This document shows positions 22,727 through 61,044 of a DNA stretch of 64,000 bases, in pieces. The stretch lies in the sequence record MW822008.1. The stretch is one strand, 5' to 3'. How positions within the stretch are numbered: position 1 is the first letter of the stretch; the number at the start of each line of letters is the position of its first letter. Under the pieces are notes generated by a model. It ran no database searches. It saw only the letters and a program-made list of their open reading frames with translations, and was not told the DNA's origin. The position numbers were made by a program, and so were the translations under genes.

Positions 22727-22795
22727 ATTTTATTTCCTTTTTAAATATAAGTATGAAATATATTTGTTTTTTACATCAGATGCACCATGAACTAG

Positions 22796-22824
22796 TTGAC
22801 AAAACATCAGTGGTATGATATGAT
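22796..22824 (+). promoter_or_regulatory. sigma70-type promoter
   Basis: TTGACA-17 nt-TATGAT with extended -10 TG. Confidence 0.7.
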
Positions 22825-22935
22825 CTGTTATAAACTGTACACCTTAAGTTTTATTTTTAAAAATTTGAGTTAAGTACAGAAAAAGTTTGACTTAAGTGTT
22901 TAAGTACTATATTATTTATATCTTCCTAAACAAAA

Positions 22936-23559
22936 TTGAGGACTTGTTATATGAAAAGACTATGGCTTGAAGTGATACAAGCAGCAATGTTTCTATTGTT
23001 AATAAATTTTCCAGCCAGTGCTGGTATTGAAAGTAAAAATGTGATAAAGTATAATCCTGAAACCCGAAATGTATATTTCATATCAGATATTACAGATGGG
23101 TCACTCAAGAGAATGATAGAGTTGTATGATAAAGAACACTATGATACCATCACAATTACATCTCCTGGTGGTGATTTTGATGCAGGTATTCGAATGGCAA
23201 ACTTTGTTAGAGACAATGGGATAAATTTAATTGTTTCTAGGTATTGCAATTCAGCATGTACTGTGGTATTCTTTAGTGTATCTCCCGAAAAGCGATATAT
23301 GACAAATCGCTCAGTACTGGGTCTTCATAACATTTCGATTAAAAGTAATGTTACTGATGGTGATAATTCATTTGTGTCTGTAAGACAGTTATCAACTTTT
23401 ACCGAAGAAATGGCAACAAAGGTAGGTTTCCTTTTTTCACTATATGCAGCAAATGGAATCCCACCAGAAGTTCTATTTAGAGTTAGTCGTTCTCGTGGTG
23501 AAGATGTTGTAATATTAACAAAACCAGAACTGGTTTTTTACGGTTCAGTCAAACAATAA
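22936..23559 (+). CDS. secreted ClpP/crotonase-fold peptidase-like protein
   Basis: Signal-peptide-like N-terminus (...PASA); ITSPGG, CNSACT and LGLH motifs. Confidence 0.7.
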   Translation: MRTCYMKRLWLEVIQAAMFLLLINFPASAGIESKNVIKYNPETRNVYFISDITDGSLKRMIELYDKEHYDTITITSPGGDFDAGIRMANFVRDNGINLIVSRYCNSACTVVFFSVSPEKRYMTNRSVLGLHNISIKSNVTDGDNSFVSVRQLSTFTEEMATKVGFLFSLYAANGIPPEVLFRVSRSRGEDVVILTKPELVFYGSVKQ

Positions 23560-34368: not shown

Positions 34369-34779
34369 ATGTTAGCTGATGAATTTATGTCACTAAGTAT
34401 CAAGATATTTGATATACTAGGTGATGAAACAGATTTCAATCTAAGCGACAAAGATATTCCATTGGAAGATGGTGGATACTTTTTTGCGATTGGAACTACG
34501 TATAATCTGGATCTTTCAAAGCCTATCAGTGATGATAGTGATTATAATGCAACAACATATTTTGATTTCCAGCTTGATGGACATAAAGAGCGTTTACTAA
34601 CGTACAGACGTAAAGGTAGTTTCAATAGAACCGAGATTACAATAATGGATTTTGAAAAACGCATTGAACTAGCTAAGAAACATCCATTCATCAGTACTCA
34701 TACATTTAATAGACTAATCGATCTATTAGATAATTATCCATATACAATCCGAGGGTCGTTACGTTTAAATGCAGAATGA
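34369..34779 (+). CDS. hypothetical protein
   Basis: ORF track. Confidence 0.65.
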   Translation: MLADEFMSLSIKIFDILGDETDFNLSDKDIPLEDGGYFFAIGTTYNLDLSKPISDDSDYNATTYFDFQLDGHKERLLTYRRKGSFNRTEITIMDFEKRIELAKKHPFISTHTFNRLIDLLDNYPYTIRGSLRLNAE

Positions 34780-34954
34780 AATCTTCAAAAAAGAATACGA
34801 TGGTGAAAGTCTCTATGATATTCAAAGAGACGTACATGAAGCATTCGATTCAAGATTTAACCCATTAGCTGAACAAATCCCACAAGATGAGTTTGGTTTT
34901 CAGGAAGGCACTTTCACAGTGACTATTACATGGAGTCCAGATGAGACTAGCTAA
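34769..34954 (+). CDS. small acidic hypothetical protein
   Basis: ORF track. Confidence 0.65.
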   Translation: MQNEIFKKEYDGESLYDIQRDVHEAFDSRFNPLAEQIPQDEFGFQEGTFTVTITWSPDETS

Positions 34955-35055
34955 ACTTGTCATAGGTTGTAGTGCACTTGCTGCATATATGCTTTTTTCC
35001 GCACCAACCAATGTATTACTGTTAATTTGGGCAGTTGTTATATTAGCAGTACTTT

Positions 35056-35078
35056 AAAGCACCCTAGTGGTGCTTTTT
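35056..35078 (+). terminator. rho-independent terminator
   Basis: AAAGCACC-CTAGT-GGTGCTTTTT. Confidence 0.8.
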
Positions 35079-35112
35079 CTATTTGTGCAAATAAAAACCA
35101 ATGTGACTTTTC

Positions 35113-35155
35113 CTTGATATAGGTCAAGAGAAATAACCTGTTCTGACGCTATAAT
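35113..35155 (+). promoter_or_regulatory. FNR-type box plus -10 element (class II architecture) upstream of nrdD
   Basis: TTGAT-ATAG-GTCAA at 35114-35127 and TATAAT at 35150-35155; box centre at -41.5. Confidence 0.7.
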
Positions 35156-35216
35156 GTTGTCTGGTGATATTAAATATCTTCACCCCCAGATGATTTCAAA
35201 ATACAAGGAATGTACA

Positions 35217-37022
35217 ATGCAATTAGATAAATTATATACTGACGTAACGAATTTCCTCAATCAGAGCAATACTGATCTTACCAACGAAAATGCGAACAAA
35301 GATGCGAAATGCGTCAATACACACAGGGATTTACTTGCAGGTATCCTATCTAAGCATTATTCACAAGATGTTATTCCAAATGAGCTAATGCAGTGGCATA
35401 ATGATGGTTATGGTCATATTCATGATTTAGACTACTATATCAGCCCATTAACCAACTGTTGCTTAGTTAACTACCCAGATATGCTAAAAAATGGATTTAC
35501 CATTGGTTGTGCCAAAATTGAAGAACCAAAGAGTTTTAGTGTAGCATGTACAGTACTGACACAGATTGTACAAGCTGTAGCTAGTTCCCAATACGGCGGT
35601 CAATCGTTGGCTCACATTGATGTCGGTTTAGAACCTTACGTTCAAAAGTCATGGGATAAGCTGTTAGAAAAACAAAAGAAATATAATCTAAGTGATGAGT
35701 TCATTGAAGAAGAATTACGAAAAGAAGTATACGATGGATGTCAAACATTACTTTACCAGACTAATTCAATGATTAGCACTAATGGACAAGCTGCATTCAT
35801 TTCTCTTAGTTTAGGGCTTAATACTTCTAAATTTGGTAAATTAATCACTGAACAGTACTTAAAAGTTCATGAGAATGGTTTAGGTAAAGATAAGATTACT
35901 CCAGTGTTTCCTAAAGTAATTTTCTTTTTACAAGATGGTATAAACATGAATACCAATGATAGTAATTATGACCTTAAACAGTTAGCTATGCGTTGTGCAT
36001 CAAAACGAATCTACCCAGACTTTGTTTCAGTTCCATTAAATCACAAAGTGACGGGAAGTAGTAGTACTGCTGTAACACCGATGGGATGTCGTTCATTCTT
36101 AGGAAAATGGGAAGATTCAAATGGAAATGAACAATACAACGGTCGTTTCAATTTAGGTGTGGTTTCTATCAATTTACCTCTAATTGCTCTTGAGAGTGAT
36201 TCTGATGGAGAGTTTTTTGATAAGATAGACGAGCATATGAATATTGCATATCGTGCTCAGATGAACCGTGTGGAGCGTTTAAAAGGCACTAAAGCGAAGC
36301 AGAATCCAATTTTGTTCATGGAAGGTGCATTAGCACGTTTAGGTGCAGAAGAAACCATTGACAAGCTATTTTACAATGGTTATGCTAGTATTAGTATTGG
36401 TTATGTTGGTCTTGTTGAATGTTCAGAAATCCTCACTGGTTCTATCAGTAAGGAGTTTTGTATGTCAGTACTGAATTATATGAAAGTAAAATGTGATGAG
36501 TTCAAAAAAGAAAGTAATATTGCTTTTAGTCTATATGGAACTCCAGCAGAGTCGCTTTGTTATAAATTTGCACGTTGCATTGAAGCAAAATATCCTTCAG
36601 TACTAAAACGTGATTACATCACAAATTCCTTCCATCAACCAGTATGGGTAGAAAGTTCTCCATTTGATAAATGGAGTTATGAAGAAGGGTTTGCTTACCT
36701 AAGTAACGGTGGAAACATCAGTTATGTTGAATCTCCAAACTTAGCAAACAACATTCAAGCACTTGAAACATTAGTTAACTATGCGTACACTAAGATACCA
36801 TATTTTGGTATTAACCAACCAGTTGACCATTGTTATGAATGTGGCTTCCAGGGTGAGTTCAGTGTAGATAAACATGGTTTCCACTGTCCTGTATGTGATA
36901 ATCGTAATGAGAAGACAATCTCAGTGATTCGTCGTGTTTCTGGGTACTTGGGTAATCCTTCTTCGCGTGGCTTCAATAAAGGCAAGCAACAAGAGTGTTG
37001 TGAGCGTATTCAGCACAAATAA
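35217..37022 (+). CDS. nrdD: anaerobic ribonucleoside-triphosphate reductase (class III)
   Basis: ENANKD, HIHDLDY, TNCCL, SSQYGGQ, MGCRSFL, RFNLGVVSINL, CYECG/CPVC and RRVSGYL; no ATP cone. Confidence 0.96.
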   Translation: MQLDKLYTDVTNFLNQSNTDLTNENANKDAKCVNTHRDLLAGILSKHYSQDVIPNELMQWHNDGYGHIHDLDYYISPLTNCCLVNYPDMLKNGFTIGCAKIEEPKSFSVACTVLTQIVQAVASSQYGGQSLAHIDVGLEPYVQKSWDKLLEKQKKYNLSDEFIEEELRKEVYDGCQTLLYQTNSMISTNGQAAFISLSLGLNTSKFGKLITEQYLKVHENGLGKDKITPVFPKVIFFLQDGINMNTNDSNYDLKQLAMRCASKRIYPDFVSVPLNHKVTGSSSTAVTPMGCRSFLGKWEDSNGNEQYNGRFNLGVVSINLPLIALESDSDGEFFDKIDEHMNIAYRAQMNRVERLKGTKAKQNPILFMEGALARLGAEETIDKLFYNGYASISIGYVGLVECSEILTGSISKEFCMSVLNYMKVKCDEFKKESNIAFSLYGTPAESLCYKFARCIEAKYPSVLKRDYITNSFHQPVWVESSPFDKWSYEEGFAYLSNGGNISYVESPNLANNIQALETLVNYAYTKIPYFGINQPVDHCYECGFQGEFSVDKHGFHCPVCDNRNEKTISVIRRVSGYLGNPSSRGFNKGKQQECCERIQHK

Positions 37023-37030
37023 GGTAAATT

Positions 37031-37363
37031 ATGGATTTAAAGCCAATTGTGGTTAACAAATACAAAGAACCGTATGATGTGTATATTGGACGTGGGTCTA
37101 AATGGGGAAACCCATTTACCCATATTAAAGATAAACAAACCAAAGCCGAGTTCATTGTTAGTACAAGAGAAGAATCAATTGAAAAATTCAGAGAATACAT
37201 TATTGAACGTATTTCTTGTGGAGAAGTTAAGATTGATGAATTACTTGAACTCGCAGGGAAACGCCTTGGTTGTTTCTGTAAACCAAAATCATGTCACGGC
37301 GATGTTCTTGTCGAAATAGTGAGTGCAATATTAGATGAATTACCAGACGATAATCAAGGATGA
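37031..37363 (+). CDS. DUF4326-family protein
   Basis: YDVYIGRGSKWGNPF and LGCFCKPKSCHGDVL motifs. Confidence 0.85.
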   Translation: MDLKPIVVNKYKEPYDVYIGRGSKWGNPFTHIKDKQTKAEFIVSTREESIEKFREYIIERISCGEVKIDELLELAGKRLGCFCKPKSCHGDVLVEIVSAILDELPDDNQG

Positions 37364-37805
37364 TTTAGTAAATGGAGAGGGCGTTCGCTGCTCTTTATTT
37401 GTTAGTGGGTGTTCGCACGGATGTGATGGTTGCTTCAATGAAGAAGCATGGGATTACAGAAGTGGTCAATTGTTCAGTACTGAAACAGTTGAGATTATAC
37501 TACAGGAACTAAAAAAACCATATGTTAGTGGTTTGTCACTTCTAGGCGGCGATCCATTAATGAAAAAGAATATAGATGAAGTTTTAAATCTATGCAAAGT
37601 AGTTAAAGAAACTTATCCTAGTAAAACTATTTGGTGCTGGAGTGGGTATACTTTAGATGAGATTATGAAAAATCATGCTAAAGATATACTTCAGTACTTA
37701 GATGTATTAGTTGATGGTAAGTTTATTGAGTCCGAAAAGAATTTAAAATTACCTTTCCGTGGTTCAAATAATCAAAGAATACTATATAAAAATAAAGATT
37801 TTTAG
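37335..37805 (+). CDS. nrdG: anaerobic RNR activating radical-SAM protein
   Basis: NGEGVRCSLFVSGCSHGCDGCFN, LLGGDP and FRGSNNQ motifs. Confidence 0.95.
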   Translation: MNYQTIIKDDLVNGEGVRCSLFVSGCSHGCDGCFNEEAWDYRSGQLFSTETVEIILQELKKPYVSGLSLLGGDPLMKKNIDEVLNLCKVVKETYPSKTIWCWSGYTLDEIMKNHAKDILQYLDVLVDGKFIESEKNLKLPFRGSNNQRILYKNKDF

Positions 37806-37808
37806 CAT

Positions 37809-37831
37809 AAGCACCCGTTGGGTGCTTTTTT
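37809..37831 (+). terminator. rho-independent terminator
   Basis: AAGCACCC-GTT-GGGTGCTT followed by a T-run. Confidence 0.88.
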
Positions 37832-37839
37832 ATTATGTA

Positions 37840-37847
37840 TATAAATA
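37840..37847 (+). promoter_or_regulatory. T4-type late promoter
   Basis: TATAAATA just after the terminator and upstream of the tail-protein genes. Confidence 0.7.
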
Positions 37848-37881: not shown

Positions 37882-40578
37882 ATGTCAAAGAAAATATATG
37901 GTGGCTTAGATGTCACACATAATGTGACAGTTAATGGTAAAAGAACAATTCAAGGAATAAATGAACAAGTTTTTGATTCCAACGGTAACTTGGAATTAGA
38001 TACTTATTCCAGAGATGAAGTACTAGATATAGTAAGTATGATGCCAATCTCCCATTATGGTTCACAAAACTATCTACCTGCGGGTGTTTCTGGGGATTTC
38101 AATGGTGCATCAGAAAACCAGTCACAACGTAGAAATAAAATTTTATTAGAAAACGATGGTACACTAGTACTTTTACGTAGTGGGACAAACGGTAGTGTTG
38201 AGGGATTATTTTATTCATATTTGGCTAACGCATTATCAGTTGATGACATGAGCCGTACAATTAACACTAGTCGTCAATACAAGCCTGGGTTTTTTGGTTC
38301 AAATAGAGTTGCGATTGGTTTATACAATACTGATCCAAATATTTTACTCGGTAGATATATTGATACTTCTAACAGTACTAATGGTTTGTTCATATCAATT
38401 ACCAATGGTACATTAGATGATAAATTGCATACTGGTTTTTTCGTTAACCAAGCAGATATATCACCTGAAGGTGGTATTGAATATGCTATGATGGCAGAAG
38501 ATGGTTCTATATATGTTTTTAACGTACTTAATGAAAATAACCAACTACAATTAGTTGTTGTAAAAGTTGTTTATAATATAAGCAATGGTACTTATACTGC
38601 AACTCGAATTACTGGATGGACTACTAAAACATTTTATAACACGACATATTCTGCACAAAATAATATGGTTATTACTAATCAGGTAACATCAACAAATATT
38701 GCTGATAAACCTTATGTGTATGTTCCACAAAATCTACGTGGTATTGGGATTTACATGACATCAATTGATTTATATGTTGCACAGCAGCCAGGAACGCAGA
38801 ATTTCCGCTTTAGAATGAACGGGGACGCTTGGTTTACAATGGCAACATATAATACACGTCCACAGCATAGTTACAGTTTTGTGTTCAATATGAGTACTAA
38901 ACAATGTACATTAGATGCGGGTAACGATATTGGTTCATATCAAGCACCATTAGTTATAACTAATACTGGTTCGGCATTAGTTCCTACTGGTAACGTTTTA
39001 AATAACGATCCATTGTATAACCATGCAAATGCAAGAAACATTTATAGTTCATATTTTTATTTGAATTCTGGTGAAGCTTTTTGTACTACATGTCCAAACT
39101 TAGCAGAACCATTACTTATGCAAAAAGCTAAGTTTCCTATTCAAATAGTTTATAGTATGCTGAATGTCCGTGCTGTACTTTCTACTGACTTCAAAGGTGG
39201 TATAGTTCGCCCGTCTTTTGGTTCAGCGGTTGGTTCATTTATTAATGGTGTAGAATTACTACCAGATAACAGTACTAAACAATATTCACGTGCATCAGGT
39301 AGTGGTGGATTTAGACCATCATATGCAGTTCATAAAAGTACTCCTAATTTTACATTTAAATCATTATCTTTAGGAACAATACAAGGTTATGAACCTACAG
39401 TTGAACGTGCTAATGTTGATGATAATGCAAATAATAGAATTTTTATTAGTAGTATTTCTGGGTCAACTGTCACAACCAATGGTGGTATTTTTATGGTTGG
39501 GCAACGTTATTCACAATCATTATCCTATGATAAAAACTTAAATGGCACAGGAATTATAAGCGTTACACAATCAGTACTGGACAATTTTAGAAATACTGAA
39601 TATGCCAAAGTTCTAAGTGATTGGAATTTATCAGCACAAGCATACCGTGATATGACACTATTTGTTCCACAACAAACAGACATTCCAGCTTTTGTTATGT
39701 TGAGTACAATTACTAATGATTATAGAAACTATATTAGAATTGCTGAAGTTAATGTCAATACTAGAGTTGGTAATATTACATCTATTACATTTAAGCGTTT
39801 AGTACTTGAGAATACGTATGGTGATAACTTTACACCAACTGGGAATGGTTCGATTGCATCTTCTTCTGTTGGTTTGACCATATATGATGGTGGTTCATTC
39901 TACTTCATTGGTGGTTCTGACCCATTATCACATCCAACAATAGGTAATACTGCAACTCATCAATTTAGAGCATATGTAACTAAATCAACTGCACAATTTA
40001 CAAGTTTTATAATTACTGGATCTCATGCCAGTTATGAACAAGGAAGTCAACCAGCAGCATTACCTGGTATTGGTTTTGGAATTTTTGAACCAATGGATTA
40101 CTCAAATAAAATGACATTCAAAAAATATGGAACAACGATTGCAGACTATAATAACTGGACTGCACAAGGTAGCCCAATTAACGTAGTATCCCAGGACGTT
40201 GCTCAAGGGTTTATTGTATATTTTACAGAGGAAACACCAGTTATTCTTTCAGGTAAGTCATTTTCACTACCAGTTTCAAATATTGATTTGAGAACTATTA
40301 AGTCTAATCCAGCAAATACAACATTTTATGTATATGTTAAATTGGAACAAGGATTGGCAAACTATTACATAACTACTGATGTTATTTCTGAAACAGGGAC
40401 AACTGCATATAATATTTTTTGGATAGGTACAATTCAAACTAATGCAATTCAAATCGAAACAATTAATATACAAAAACGTTCCCGTTTAGATATATTTGGT
40501 GCTTCACTTGAATCAGCAGGTTCATCGTTCCCAGTTAGCTACGGTCTACCATCACAAACAGGAACCATAAACTGGTAA
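37882..40578 (+). CDS. putative tail fibre / baseplate-associated structural protein A
   Basis: 898 aa, rich in Thr/Ser/Asn/Gly; paralog of 41194..43923; late promoter upstream. Confidence 0.65.
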   Translation: MSKKIYGGLDVTHNVTVNGKRTIQGINEQVFDSNGNLELDTYSRDEVLDIVSMMPISHYGSQNYLPAGVSGDFNGASENQSQRRNKILLENDGTLVLLRSGTNGSVEGLFYSYLANALSVDDMSRTINTSRQYKPGFFGSNRVAIGLYNTDPNILLGRYIDTSNSTNGLFISITNGTLDDKLHTGFFVNQADISPEGGIEYAMMAEDGSIYVFNVLNENNQLQLVVVKVVYNISNGTYTATRITGWTTKTFYNTTYSAQNNMVITNQVTSTNIADKPYVYVPQNLRGIGIYMTSIDLYVAQQPGTQNFRFRMNGDAWFTMATYNTRPQHSYSFVFNMSTKQCTLDAGNDIGSYQAPLVITNTGSALVPTGNVLNNDPLYNHANARNIYSSYFYLNSGEAFCTTCPNLAEPLLMQKAKFPIQIVYSMLNVRAVLSTDFKGGIVRPSFGSAVGSFINGVELLPDNSTKQYSRASGSGGFRPSYAVHKSTPNFTFKSLSLGTIQGYEPTVERANVDDNANNRIFISSISGSTVTTNGGIFMVGQRYSQSLSYDKNLNGTGIISVTQSVLDNFRNTEYAKVLSDWNLSAQAYRDMTLFVPQQTDIPAFVMLSTITNDYRNYIRIAEVNVNTRVGNITSITFKRLVLENTYGDNFTPTGNGSIASSSVGLTIYDGGSFYFIGGSDPLSHPTIGNTATHQFRAYVTKSTAQFTSFIITGSHASYEQGSQPAALPGIGFGIFEPMDYSNKMTFKKYGTTIADYNNWTAQGSPINVVSQDVAQGFIVYFTEETPVILSGKSFSLPVSNIDLRTIKSNPANTTFYVYVKLEQGLANYYITTDVISETGTTAYNIFWIGTIQTNAIQIETINIQKRSRLDIFGASLESAGSSFPVSYGLPSQTGTINW

Positions 40579-50720: not shown

Positions 50721-50721
50721 C

Positions 50722-50750
50722 TTGACATAGAAAAAGTAATTATGTATAAT
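50722..50750 (+). promoter_or_regulatory. consensus sigma70 promoter
   Basis: TTGACA-17 nt-TATAAT. Confidence 0.88.
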
Positions 50751-50751
50751 C

Positions 50752-50782
50752 AGAGAACTTCATATGGAGTTCTCTTTTTTTT
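50752..50782 (+). terminator. rho-independent terminator of the GH8 gene
   Basis: AGAGAACTT-CATAT-GGAGTTCTCT followed by a T-run. Confidence 0.8.
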
Positions 50783-50795
50783 ATAAGGTGATAAA

Positions 50796-60877: not shown

Positions 60878-60900
60878 TGTGGATATTTGGTAAATAGGTC

Positions 60901-60928
60901 TTGATATAACTAAAAAGTATGCTATACT
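60901..60928 (+). promoter_or_regulatory. sigma70-type promoter upstream of the lysozyme gene
   Basis: TTGATA-16 nt-TATACT with extended -10 TG. Confidence 0.55.
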
Positions 60929-61044
60929 ACTTAAATGTTCCAAAGAACAACTGAGTACTGTAGAAAGTCCAATGAGGCTTTTGCAAATGGCCTCTTTGCC
61001 CTCTTTGTGATTGCTCATTGTTAACAACCAACAAAGGAGGCGTT

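Follow-up and report, generated by a model that had tools for sequence, protein, structure and literature searches.

Could a lytic jumbo phage bring its anaerobic ribonucleotide reductase (RNR) under the control of the oxygen sensor of its host? The question is raised by the intergenic region upstream of nrdD, the first gene of an nrdD-DUF4326-nrdG unit in sequence record MW822008.1, of which a stretch of 64,000 nucleotides (referred to below as the window) was analyzed. The window belongs to an Asteriusvirus jumbo coliphage: the 1,001 bases compared (34700-35700) show 100% identity with phages BF17 and E9.1, and 36 related records matched this query; the 383-kb BF17 record, identical across these bases, was used as a whole-genome stand-in. 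The palindrome at 35114-35127 is probably a working site for host FNR that would make nrdD-DUF4326-nrdG anaerobically inducible. Host-FNR oxygen control of this operon had been proposed in an original prediction made from the letters of the window, and comparison with other phages supports it, although the claimed position of exactly -41.5 needed correction and a second promoter core had to be brought in.

An FNR-type box followed by a -10 hexamer

The elements of the promoter region that matter for the argument are as follows.

35114..35127, unstranded: FNR-type box TTGAT-N4-GTCAA, centre 35120.5, matching 9/10 positions of the consensus TTGATnnnnATCAA
35150..35155, + strand: TATAAT, -10 element of P1 (a putative sigma-70 promoter), 22 nt past the box, with a predicted start near 35162
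35171..35176, + strand: TAAATA, core of a putative phage late-type promoter (P2) resembling the T4 motif TATAAATA, with a predicted start at A 35182, within a conserved TTCACC
35082..35091, unstranded: palindrome TTTGTGCAAA, 34 bp upstream of the box centre, its TTG..CAAA kept in 16 jumbo-phage lineages

The box, whose core reads TTGAT-ATAG-GTCAA, is part of an extended 16-bp palindrome, CTTGATATAGGTCAAG (outer C...G), at 35113-35128. Measured against the FNR consensus (PMC3688515), it carries the single mismatch that had been reported for a box centred at 35120.5, and the TATAAT that had been placed at 35150-35155 is found there. The earlier observation that a good -35 element is absent also holds: the hexamer 17 nt before TATAAT (35127-35132, AGAGAA) matches TTGACA at 1/6 positions, no -35-like element was found 16-18 nt before TATAAT, and a consensus promoter scan called no sigma-70 site there. 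A box at 9/10 to TTGATnnnnATCAA combined with a perfect TATAAT lacking a -35 element is the sequence arrangement of class II FNR promoters. Textbook sigma-70 promoters (TTGACA, 17 nt, TATAAT or TATGAT) occur in other gaps of the window (22791-22950, 50721-50795 and 60878-60930), and this use of full host-type promoters elsewhere by the phage makes the missing -35 element at nrdD conspicuous.

The position of the box relative to transcription is less exact than its sequence. Its centre lies 29.5 bp from the first base of TATAAT here and 30.5 bp in other lineages, and the value of -41.5 holds only with an assumed start 7 nt after the hexamer (35162, predicted). The claim of "exactly -41.5" was built on a guessed start, and the -10 hexamer lies at 22 or 23 nt depending on the lineage and is missing in two. 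Among directly FNR-activated promoters of E. coli, the site is found at -41.5 +/- 4 in 19/23 and at -60.5 in one (PMC3688515).

Within the genus, six Asteriusvirus genomes were aligned, including A4, JNE01 and ph0011 (80-88% identity over the region). Nine of the 10 half-site bases are invariant and the tenth is G or A, with UE-S1 carrying the perfect consensus, while the middle four bases vary (ATAG, ATAT, TTAG, TCAG), as does the -35 zone. GCTATAAT is invariant in all six genomes, and no insertions or deletions were observed. This pattern is the footprint expected, on alignment grounds, from the site of a dimeric protein coupled to a -10 element. The upstream palindrome TTTGTGCAAA, whose column conservation reaches 0.8-0.9 at TTG and CA, could be a second operator or an UP-like element.

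Conservation of the site across phages

NrdD proteins 60-80% identical occur in 189 phage records, and a search of IMG/VR with an NrdD alignment provided 77 loci. All jumbo-phage relatives with NrdD 72-75% identical carry a 9-10/10 box located 90-95 nt before the nrdD start, in most of them as a perfect TTGATCTAGATCAA; phages with the 10/10 consensus include UE-S1, Klebsiella phiKp_21, GAP32, CBB, Serratia BF and a Yersinia phage, among others. The box is present in each of 16 distinct jumbo lineages, including Cronobacter GAP32, Pectobacterium CBB, Serratia BF, Yersinia fHe-Yen9-04 and Klebsiella phiKp_21; for one of the 16, the sole match, a distant one (79%), is Erwinia phage Hallingskeid. 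The original prediction had made conservation of the box and of its spacing in related phages a test of its function; a box of 9-10/10 is kept in 16/16 jumbo lineages. Column conservation over the 16 lineages is 100% for the first half-site, 94% for the second and 100% for TAAATA, compared with 54-69% in the flanks and 57% around the TATAAT-like hexamer.

This hexamer lies 22 nt from the box in Asteriusvirus and in phiKp_21 (Alcyoneusvirus; perfect box, 22 nt, TGaTATAAT) and 23 nt from it elsewhere. TGnTATAAT is found at 22-23 nt in four lineages besides Asteriusvirus. The hexamer reads TATTTT or TATTAT in five lineages and is unrecognisable in two (those labeled L150 and L169, the latter a Yersinia phage), both with a perfect box.

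The site is not confined to jumbo phages. Three groups of non-jumbo phages with nrdD of the same clade (59-62% identical) also carry it: phi92-like phages have TTGACtaagATCAA, 22 nt and TAAAAT upstream of nrdD, two diverged Aeromonas phages have TTGATTTG(G/A)GTCAA, 21 nt and TGaTAAAAT, and one further contig is the third case of a box with TAAAAT. Four unrelated phage backbones carry the site ahead of an nrdD of this clade. By alignment, it is conserved in phages of Escherichia, Salmonella, Klebsiella, Cronobacter, Pectobacterium, Serratia, Yersinia and Aeromonas, and probably of Erwinia as well. Conservation over these host genera argues that the site is old and selected, rather than a curiosity of a single genome. 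No box plus -10 arrangement was found at some 50 nrdD loci of phages whose NrdD is <=35% identical, nor in T2, T5 and a Felix-O1-like phage; stray 9/10 box matches occur at four of these loci, none with a -10 element at 21-23 nt. The rV5-like phages do not have the arrangement either, and their nrdD directly follows the previous gene with no intergenic gap.

A separate observation concerns the leaders of the non-jumbo cases. In phi92 (L007, 1451-1478), Aeromonas phiA019 (L131, ~360-390) and L149, the FNR-type promoter and the nrdD start codon are separated by a hairpin that resembles a terminator and carries a T-run. In phi92-like and Aeromonas phages this hairpin may be a leader attenuator or an RNA-stabilising structure.

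A fixed distance to a putative late-type promoter core

The most constant feature of the region had been overlooked by the original prediction: from the first base of the box to TAAATA there are exactly 57 nt in 16/16 jumbo lineages. The distance from the box to TATAAT shifts between 22 and 23 nt. The 43-nt spacer between box and TAAATA is 23-49% identical between lineages outside the genus, and the distance from TAAATA to the nrdD start codon varies from 33 to 47 nt by lineage. Together with the column conservation, the diverged spacer and the variable distance to the ATG indicate that the constancy of the 57 nt does not come from shared ancestry alone. In the GAP32/CBB/Serratia/Yersinia group (L138, L139, L140, L143, L150, L169 and L170; ~620-650 in each), the spacer holds a CCCC-N7-GGGG hairpin with a T-run. 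This hairpin looks like the terminator of the upstream gene, located inside the promoter spacer, and yet the 57-nt distance is kept.

TAAATA is an uncommon hexamer in BF17, where it occurs in 199 copies, counting both strands. Of the copies found <=120 nt upstream of predicted genes, 56/77 lie 20-59 nt from the start codon, where about 1.6 would be expected per 10-nt bin. In the CBB paper, an ATAAATA motif was described before structural genes, also in GAP32, and was likened to the T4 late promoter, and a gp55-like sigma was reported for CBB (PMC5259590). From its distribution in the genome, TAAATA is taken to be the late-type promoter core of this phage group. T4 late promoters consist of an 8-bp box starting at -13, with no -35 element (PMC2988020); the P2 motif of the window, ATTAAATA, agrees with the T4 consensus at 6/8 positions, and T4 numbering would place its predicted start at A 35182 and the centre of the FNR-type box at -61.5. 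A full TATAAATA at 37840-37847, right after the nrdG terminator and 35 nt before an 898-aa gene (37882-40578), is probably the late promoter of that gene.

A variant of the motif was also observed in BF17 (L214-L233; for example at 338-357 kb, minus strand), where many TAAATA sites are followed after 3-4 nt by a TATAAT-like sequence (TAAATAtagTATAAT), an arrangement that recurs ahead of the members of a gene family (paralogs of ~380 aa). This could be a late-promoter sub-class or an A/T-rich initiation region.

Proposed mechanism and the choice between promoters

The mechanism proposed from these sequences runs as follows. Without oxygen, FNR would carry its iron-sulfur cluster, dimerise and bind the box. 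At P1, with a class II layout, FNR at about -41.5 would substitute for the missing -35 contact and recruit host sigma-70 RNA polymerase. At P2, the same box would lie two helical turns farther away, at -61.5, from where FNR could aid polymerase via its alpha subunit (class I geometry). A single box could in this way act on two promoters, one read early by a host sigma and one read late by a phage sigma. In Asteriusvirus the likely target is P1, with P2 as a probable second one, and the invariant 57 nt argue that the constraint set by P2 is older and stricter. The full form of this proposal, in which one FNR site feeds two tandem promoters 20 bp apart that use different sigmas, P1 early as a class II promoter and P2 late from -61.5, is put forward tentatively and is itself rather doubtful. 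If it is true, the host oxygen sensor gates a phage-sigma promoter directly, and the 57-nt spacing, kept in 16/16 jumbo lineages with named hosts in seven enterobacterial genera, is the signature of that coupling.

Several points weigh against FNR control in the form just described. Both start sites (35162 and 35182) are predicted from the position of motifs. In the GAP32/CBB group, the P1 -10 element is degenerate and overlaps the T-run of the hairpin, and it is absent in two lineages that keep a perfect box, so that P1 cannot explain everything. A gp55-type late sigma was not clearly found in BF17: BLAST with T2 gp55 gave no match there, and phmmer gave one weak candidate (E 0.009), which PHROGs places in a family of unknown function. 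It is also conceivable that another dimeric protein binds the palindrome. Finally, ADP-ribosylation of the polymerase alpha subunit would weaken class I contacts. Such modification is carried out by T4 (PMC2988020).

In a first alternative, FNR acts only on the TAAATA promoter, from -61.5 in a class I-like manner, and TATAAT is incidental or lineage-specific, with -41.5 a by-product of the 20-bp offset. The box-TAAATA distance is indeed the sole invariant one in the 16 lineages, TAAATA acts as a promoter core genome-wide, and the TATAAT-like hexamer both moves by one nucleotide and is missing in L150 and L169 despite their perfect boxes. Annotators of Yersinia phage fHe-Yen9-03 likewise put the nrdD -10 on the TAAATA motif. 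What this alternative does not account for is the invariance of GCTATAAT in the six Asteriusvirus genomes and of TGnTATAAT in four other lineages despite diverged flanks, a retention that argues for selection on P1. Moreover, the non-jumbo phages show the class II layout alone, with TAAAAT, and we know of no host activator that works with a gp55-type holoenzyme. Class I FNR promoters are also rare in E. coli, at 1/23 (PMC3688515). Control through P2 alone is on balance considered unlikely.

In the fHe-Yen9-03 record itself (L235, 338-365), the depositors annotated the nrdD promoter with -35 TTGAAT and -10 GTAAATAAT, and the perfect FNR box 24 nt upstream of the annotated -35 was left unmarked.

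Which regulator reads the box

Control by host FNR, whichever promoter it acts on, supposes that FNR is the protein that binds the palindrome. To our knowledge, FNR is the only E. coli regulator with the consensus TTGAT-N4-ATCAA, and all named hosts of the box-carrying phages (Enterobacterales and Aeromonas) presumably have it. No match to PF13545, the Crp/FNR-type helix-turn-helix, was found in the BF17 genome with a search confined to that fold, in which all positive controls matched; a phage-encoded FNR-like regulator is accordingly rejected at the sensitivity of that search only. With no Crp/FNR-type helix-turn-helix encoded by the phage, host FNR is the most plausible reader of the box. 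A CRP site was also considered and rejected: the CRP consensus requires G where an FNR-type box has T, and the box has TTGA where the CRP core needs GTGA.

The host nrdDG operon is itself FNR-activated (PMC2892513). Its E. coli leader, as read here, contains an FNR-like TTGAGctacATCAA and a weak TTGATgcaaAGCAC, 31 bp apart, together with two NrdR boxes. In the phage promoter, no NrdR box was found: the best match has 7/16 mismatches, against 3 mismatches in each of the two E. coli control boxes. The 2008 work of Roca and co-workers is said to put the FNR sites of the host nrdDG promoter at about -64.5 and -33.5. In the phage, one strong box stands in place of the host-type layout of tandem NrdR boxes and two FNR sites ~31 bp apart, a difference which indicates that the phage promoter is not a captured or copied host nrdDG promoter. 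It would appear to keep the oxygen input and to drop NrdR, the repressor that provides deoxynucleotide (dNTP) feedback.

In a second alternative, a different dimeric DNA-binding protein, of the phage or of the host, uses the palindrome as its operator, and the likeness to an FNR site is coincidental. In favor of this, jumbo phages have hundreds of proteins without an assigned function, conservation reveals that some protein reads the palindrome but not its identity, and the second conserved palindrome, at 35082-35091, has no assigned binder. The details of the site point elsewhere: many lineages have the exact 10/10 FNR consensus, the TTGA/TCAA core is untouched by the sole change that is tolerated, A to G at position 10, and the site occurs only before an oxygen-sensitive RNR, in four unrelated backbones that share this nrdD clade. 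The phage moreover lacks a Crp/FNR-type helix-turn-helix within the search described above, and the position of the box relative to the -10 element fits FNR activation geometry (PMC3688515). Another binder is for these reasons held to be improbable.

Frequency of chance boxes

Boxes with <=1 mismatch are no rarity in this AT-rich DNA: the window has 17, where 10.2 would be expected, and the 383-kb BF17 genome has 67, compared with 44 matches to a reversed control pattern. Five one-mismatch boxes lie near the aerobic RNR genes (nrdA-nrdB), all within coding sequence, and are for that reason taken as chance occurrences. With a looser pattern, TTGA-N6-TCAA followed by TAnnnT at 21-23 nt, six sites were found in BF17, and a good box with a good -10 was found only at nrdD, so the phage does not use the motif as a general promoter element. 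When IMG/VR was scanned for the box, 21-23 nt and TATAAT, nrdD was present in 0/118 among the matches listed, a result that carries no weight either way. That the nrdD box is a functionless match in AT-rich DNA is hardly credible: such boxes are common, and the five in nrdA-nrdB show no sign of function, but only ~0.03 would be expected in the 160-nt gap before nrdD, the half-sites are kept over 16 lineages although the flanks are randomised, and the site recurs with fixed spacing and in unrelated phage backbones.

Genes and terminators of the unit

The unit downstream of the promoter region and its boundaries comprise the following features, all on the + strand.

35056..35081, + strand: intrinsic terminator closing the upstream operon and insulating the nrdD unit, with an 8-bp stem, a 5-nt loop and a T-run (hairpin 35056-35076)
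35205..35209, + strand: AAGGA, Shine-Dalgarno sequence of nrdD, invariant in the Asteriusvirus alignment
35217..37022, + strand: nrdD, class III (anaerobic) RNR, 601 aa (PF13597, E 1.4e-166, glycyl radical domain; BF17 annotation)
37031..37363, + strand: DUF4326 protein, 110 aa, overlapping the nrdG start (PF14216, E 6e-24; phrog_464)
37335..37805, + strand: nrdG, radical-SAM activase of NrdD, 156 aa (Fer4_12, E 3e-53; Radical_SAM)
37809..37835, + strand: intrinsic terminator ending the three-gene unit (hairpin with T-run 37809-37827)

The insulating terminator that had been placed upstream at 35056-35078 was recovered as a hairpin with a T-run at 35056-35076, matched by another at 37809-37827, and the 35056 hairpin is kept in Asteriusvirus, phiKp_21 and three IMG/VR jumbo lineages. 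Translation of nrdD starts at ATG 35217, preceded by AAGGA, and the same start is annotated in BF17 and G17. The longest open reading frame begins at 35154, within TATAAT; this start is rejected as a mechanical artefact, as ATG 35217 has a proper Shine-Dalgarno sequence. In the UE-S1 record (L001, 1946), nrdD is annotated from an upstream codon inside the TATAAT hexamer. The DUF4326 gene (37031-37363) is called "pyruvate formate-lyase" in the GenBank records of UE-S1, A4 and ph0011, a label that looks like a mis-annotation; Pfam detects DUF4326 only. At the position of this gene, Klebsiella phiKp_21 has a different gene of 309 aa (930 nt), and L008 has none. An aerobic class I RNR is encoded in BF17 as well, at 245652-247970, and no FNR box precedes it.

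Significance and comparison with known systems

These phages inhabit gut and sewage, where oxygen fluctuates, and carry both an aerobic and an anaerobic RNR. An FNR box at nrdD and none at the class I RNR fits an oxygen-dependent choice between the two enzymes. If FNR control is true, the phage uses the host's own oxygen sensor to pick the right RNR, and the host regulons tapped by lytic phages (phosphate, nitrogen, iron, SOS) are extended to oxygen. It would also matter when phages are used therapeutically in anaerobic niches, as their DNA synthesis there would depend on FNR of the host. The fixed distance to the late-type promoter raises the question of whether a host activator and a phage late sigma are compatible, and these ideas can be tested in a culturable E. 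coli phage. In the full-text literature covered, which does not extend to most subscription journals, neither an FNR site in the nrdD promoter of a phage nor a promoter analysis of Asteriusvirus was found to be described.

Judged by its sequence, the nrdD site joins two known kinds of element, the class II FNR promoters and the sites of host regulons that phage genomes carry. It resembles the E. coli class II FNR promoters (narG, dmsA, nirB, pflB P6, ydfZ) in its good -10, paired with a weak or missing -35, in a product that works without oxygen and in a box predicted to lie ~41.5 bp upstream of the start (PMC3688515). Unlike them, it lies in a lytic jumbo-phage genome, its start is deduced from the hexamer, and it is also phased at -61.5 to a phage-type core. 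The host nrdDG promoter of E. coli and Salmonella, which is FNR-activated (PMC2892513), serves the same enzyme pair and has an A/T-rich -10, but contains two FNR-like sites and two NrdR boxes, compared with a lone strong site and no NrdR boxes in the phage.

Host-regulon sites in phages include the Pho boxes before cyanophage pstS and phoA, the NtcA sites of cyanophages, the Fur-controlled stx1 promoter and the LexA boxes of temperate phages. As in these cases, an auxiliary metabolic gene would be placed under a host environmental sensor through the DNA site of that sensor; unlike them, the sensor here would be FNR, which responds to oxygen, and the gene is an anaerobic RNR. P2 in turn is similar to T4 late promoters (TATAAATA, read by gp55) in its TAAATA core ~33-47 nt before the start codon, the lack of a -35 and the genome-wide enrichment before genes. 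It differs from them in matching the consensus at 6/8 positions, in preceding a gene of nucleotide metabolism and in lying at a fixed distance from a host activator site, an arrangement for which no T4 late promoter is known. The new twist of the nrdD region is possibly this last feature, a host activator phased to a phage late-type promoter.

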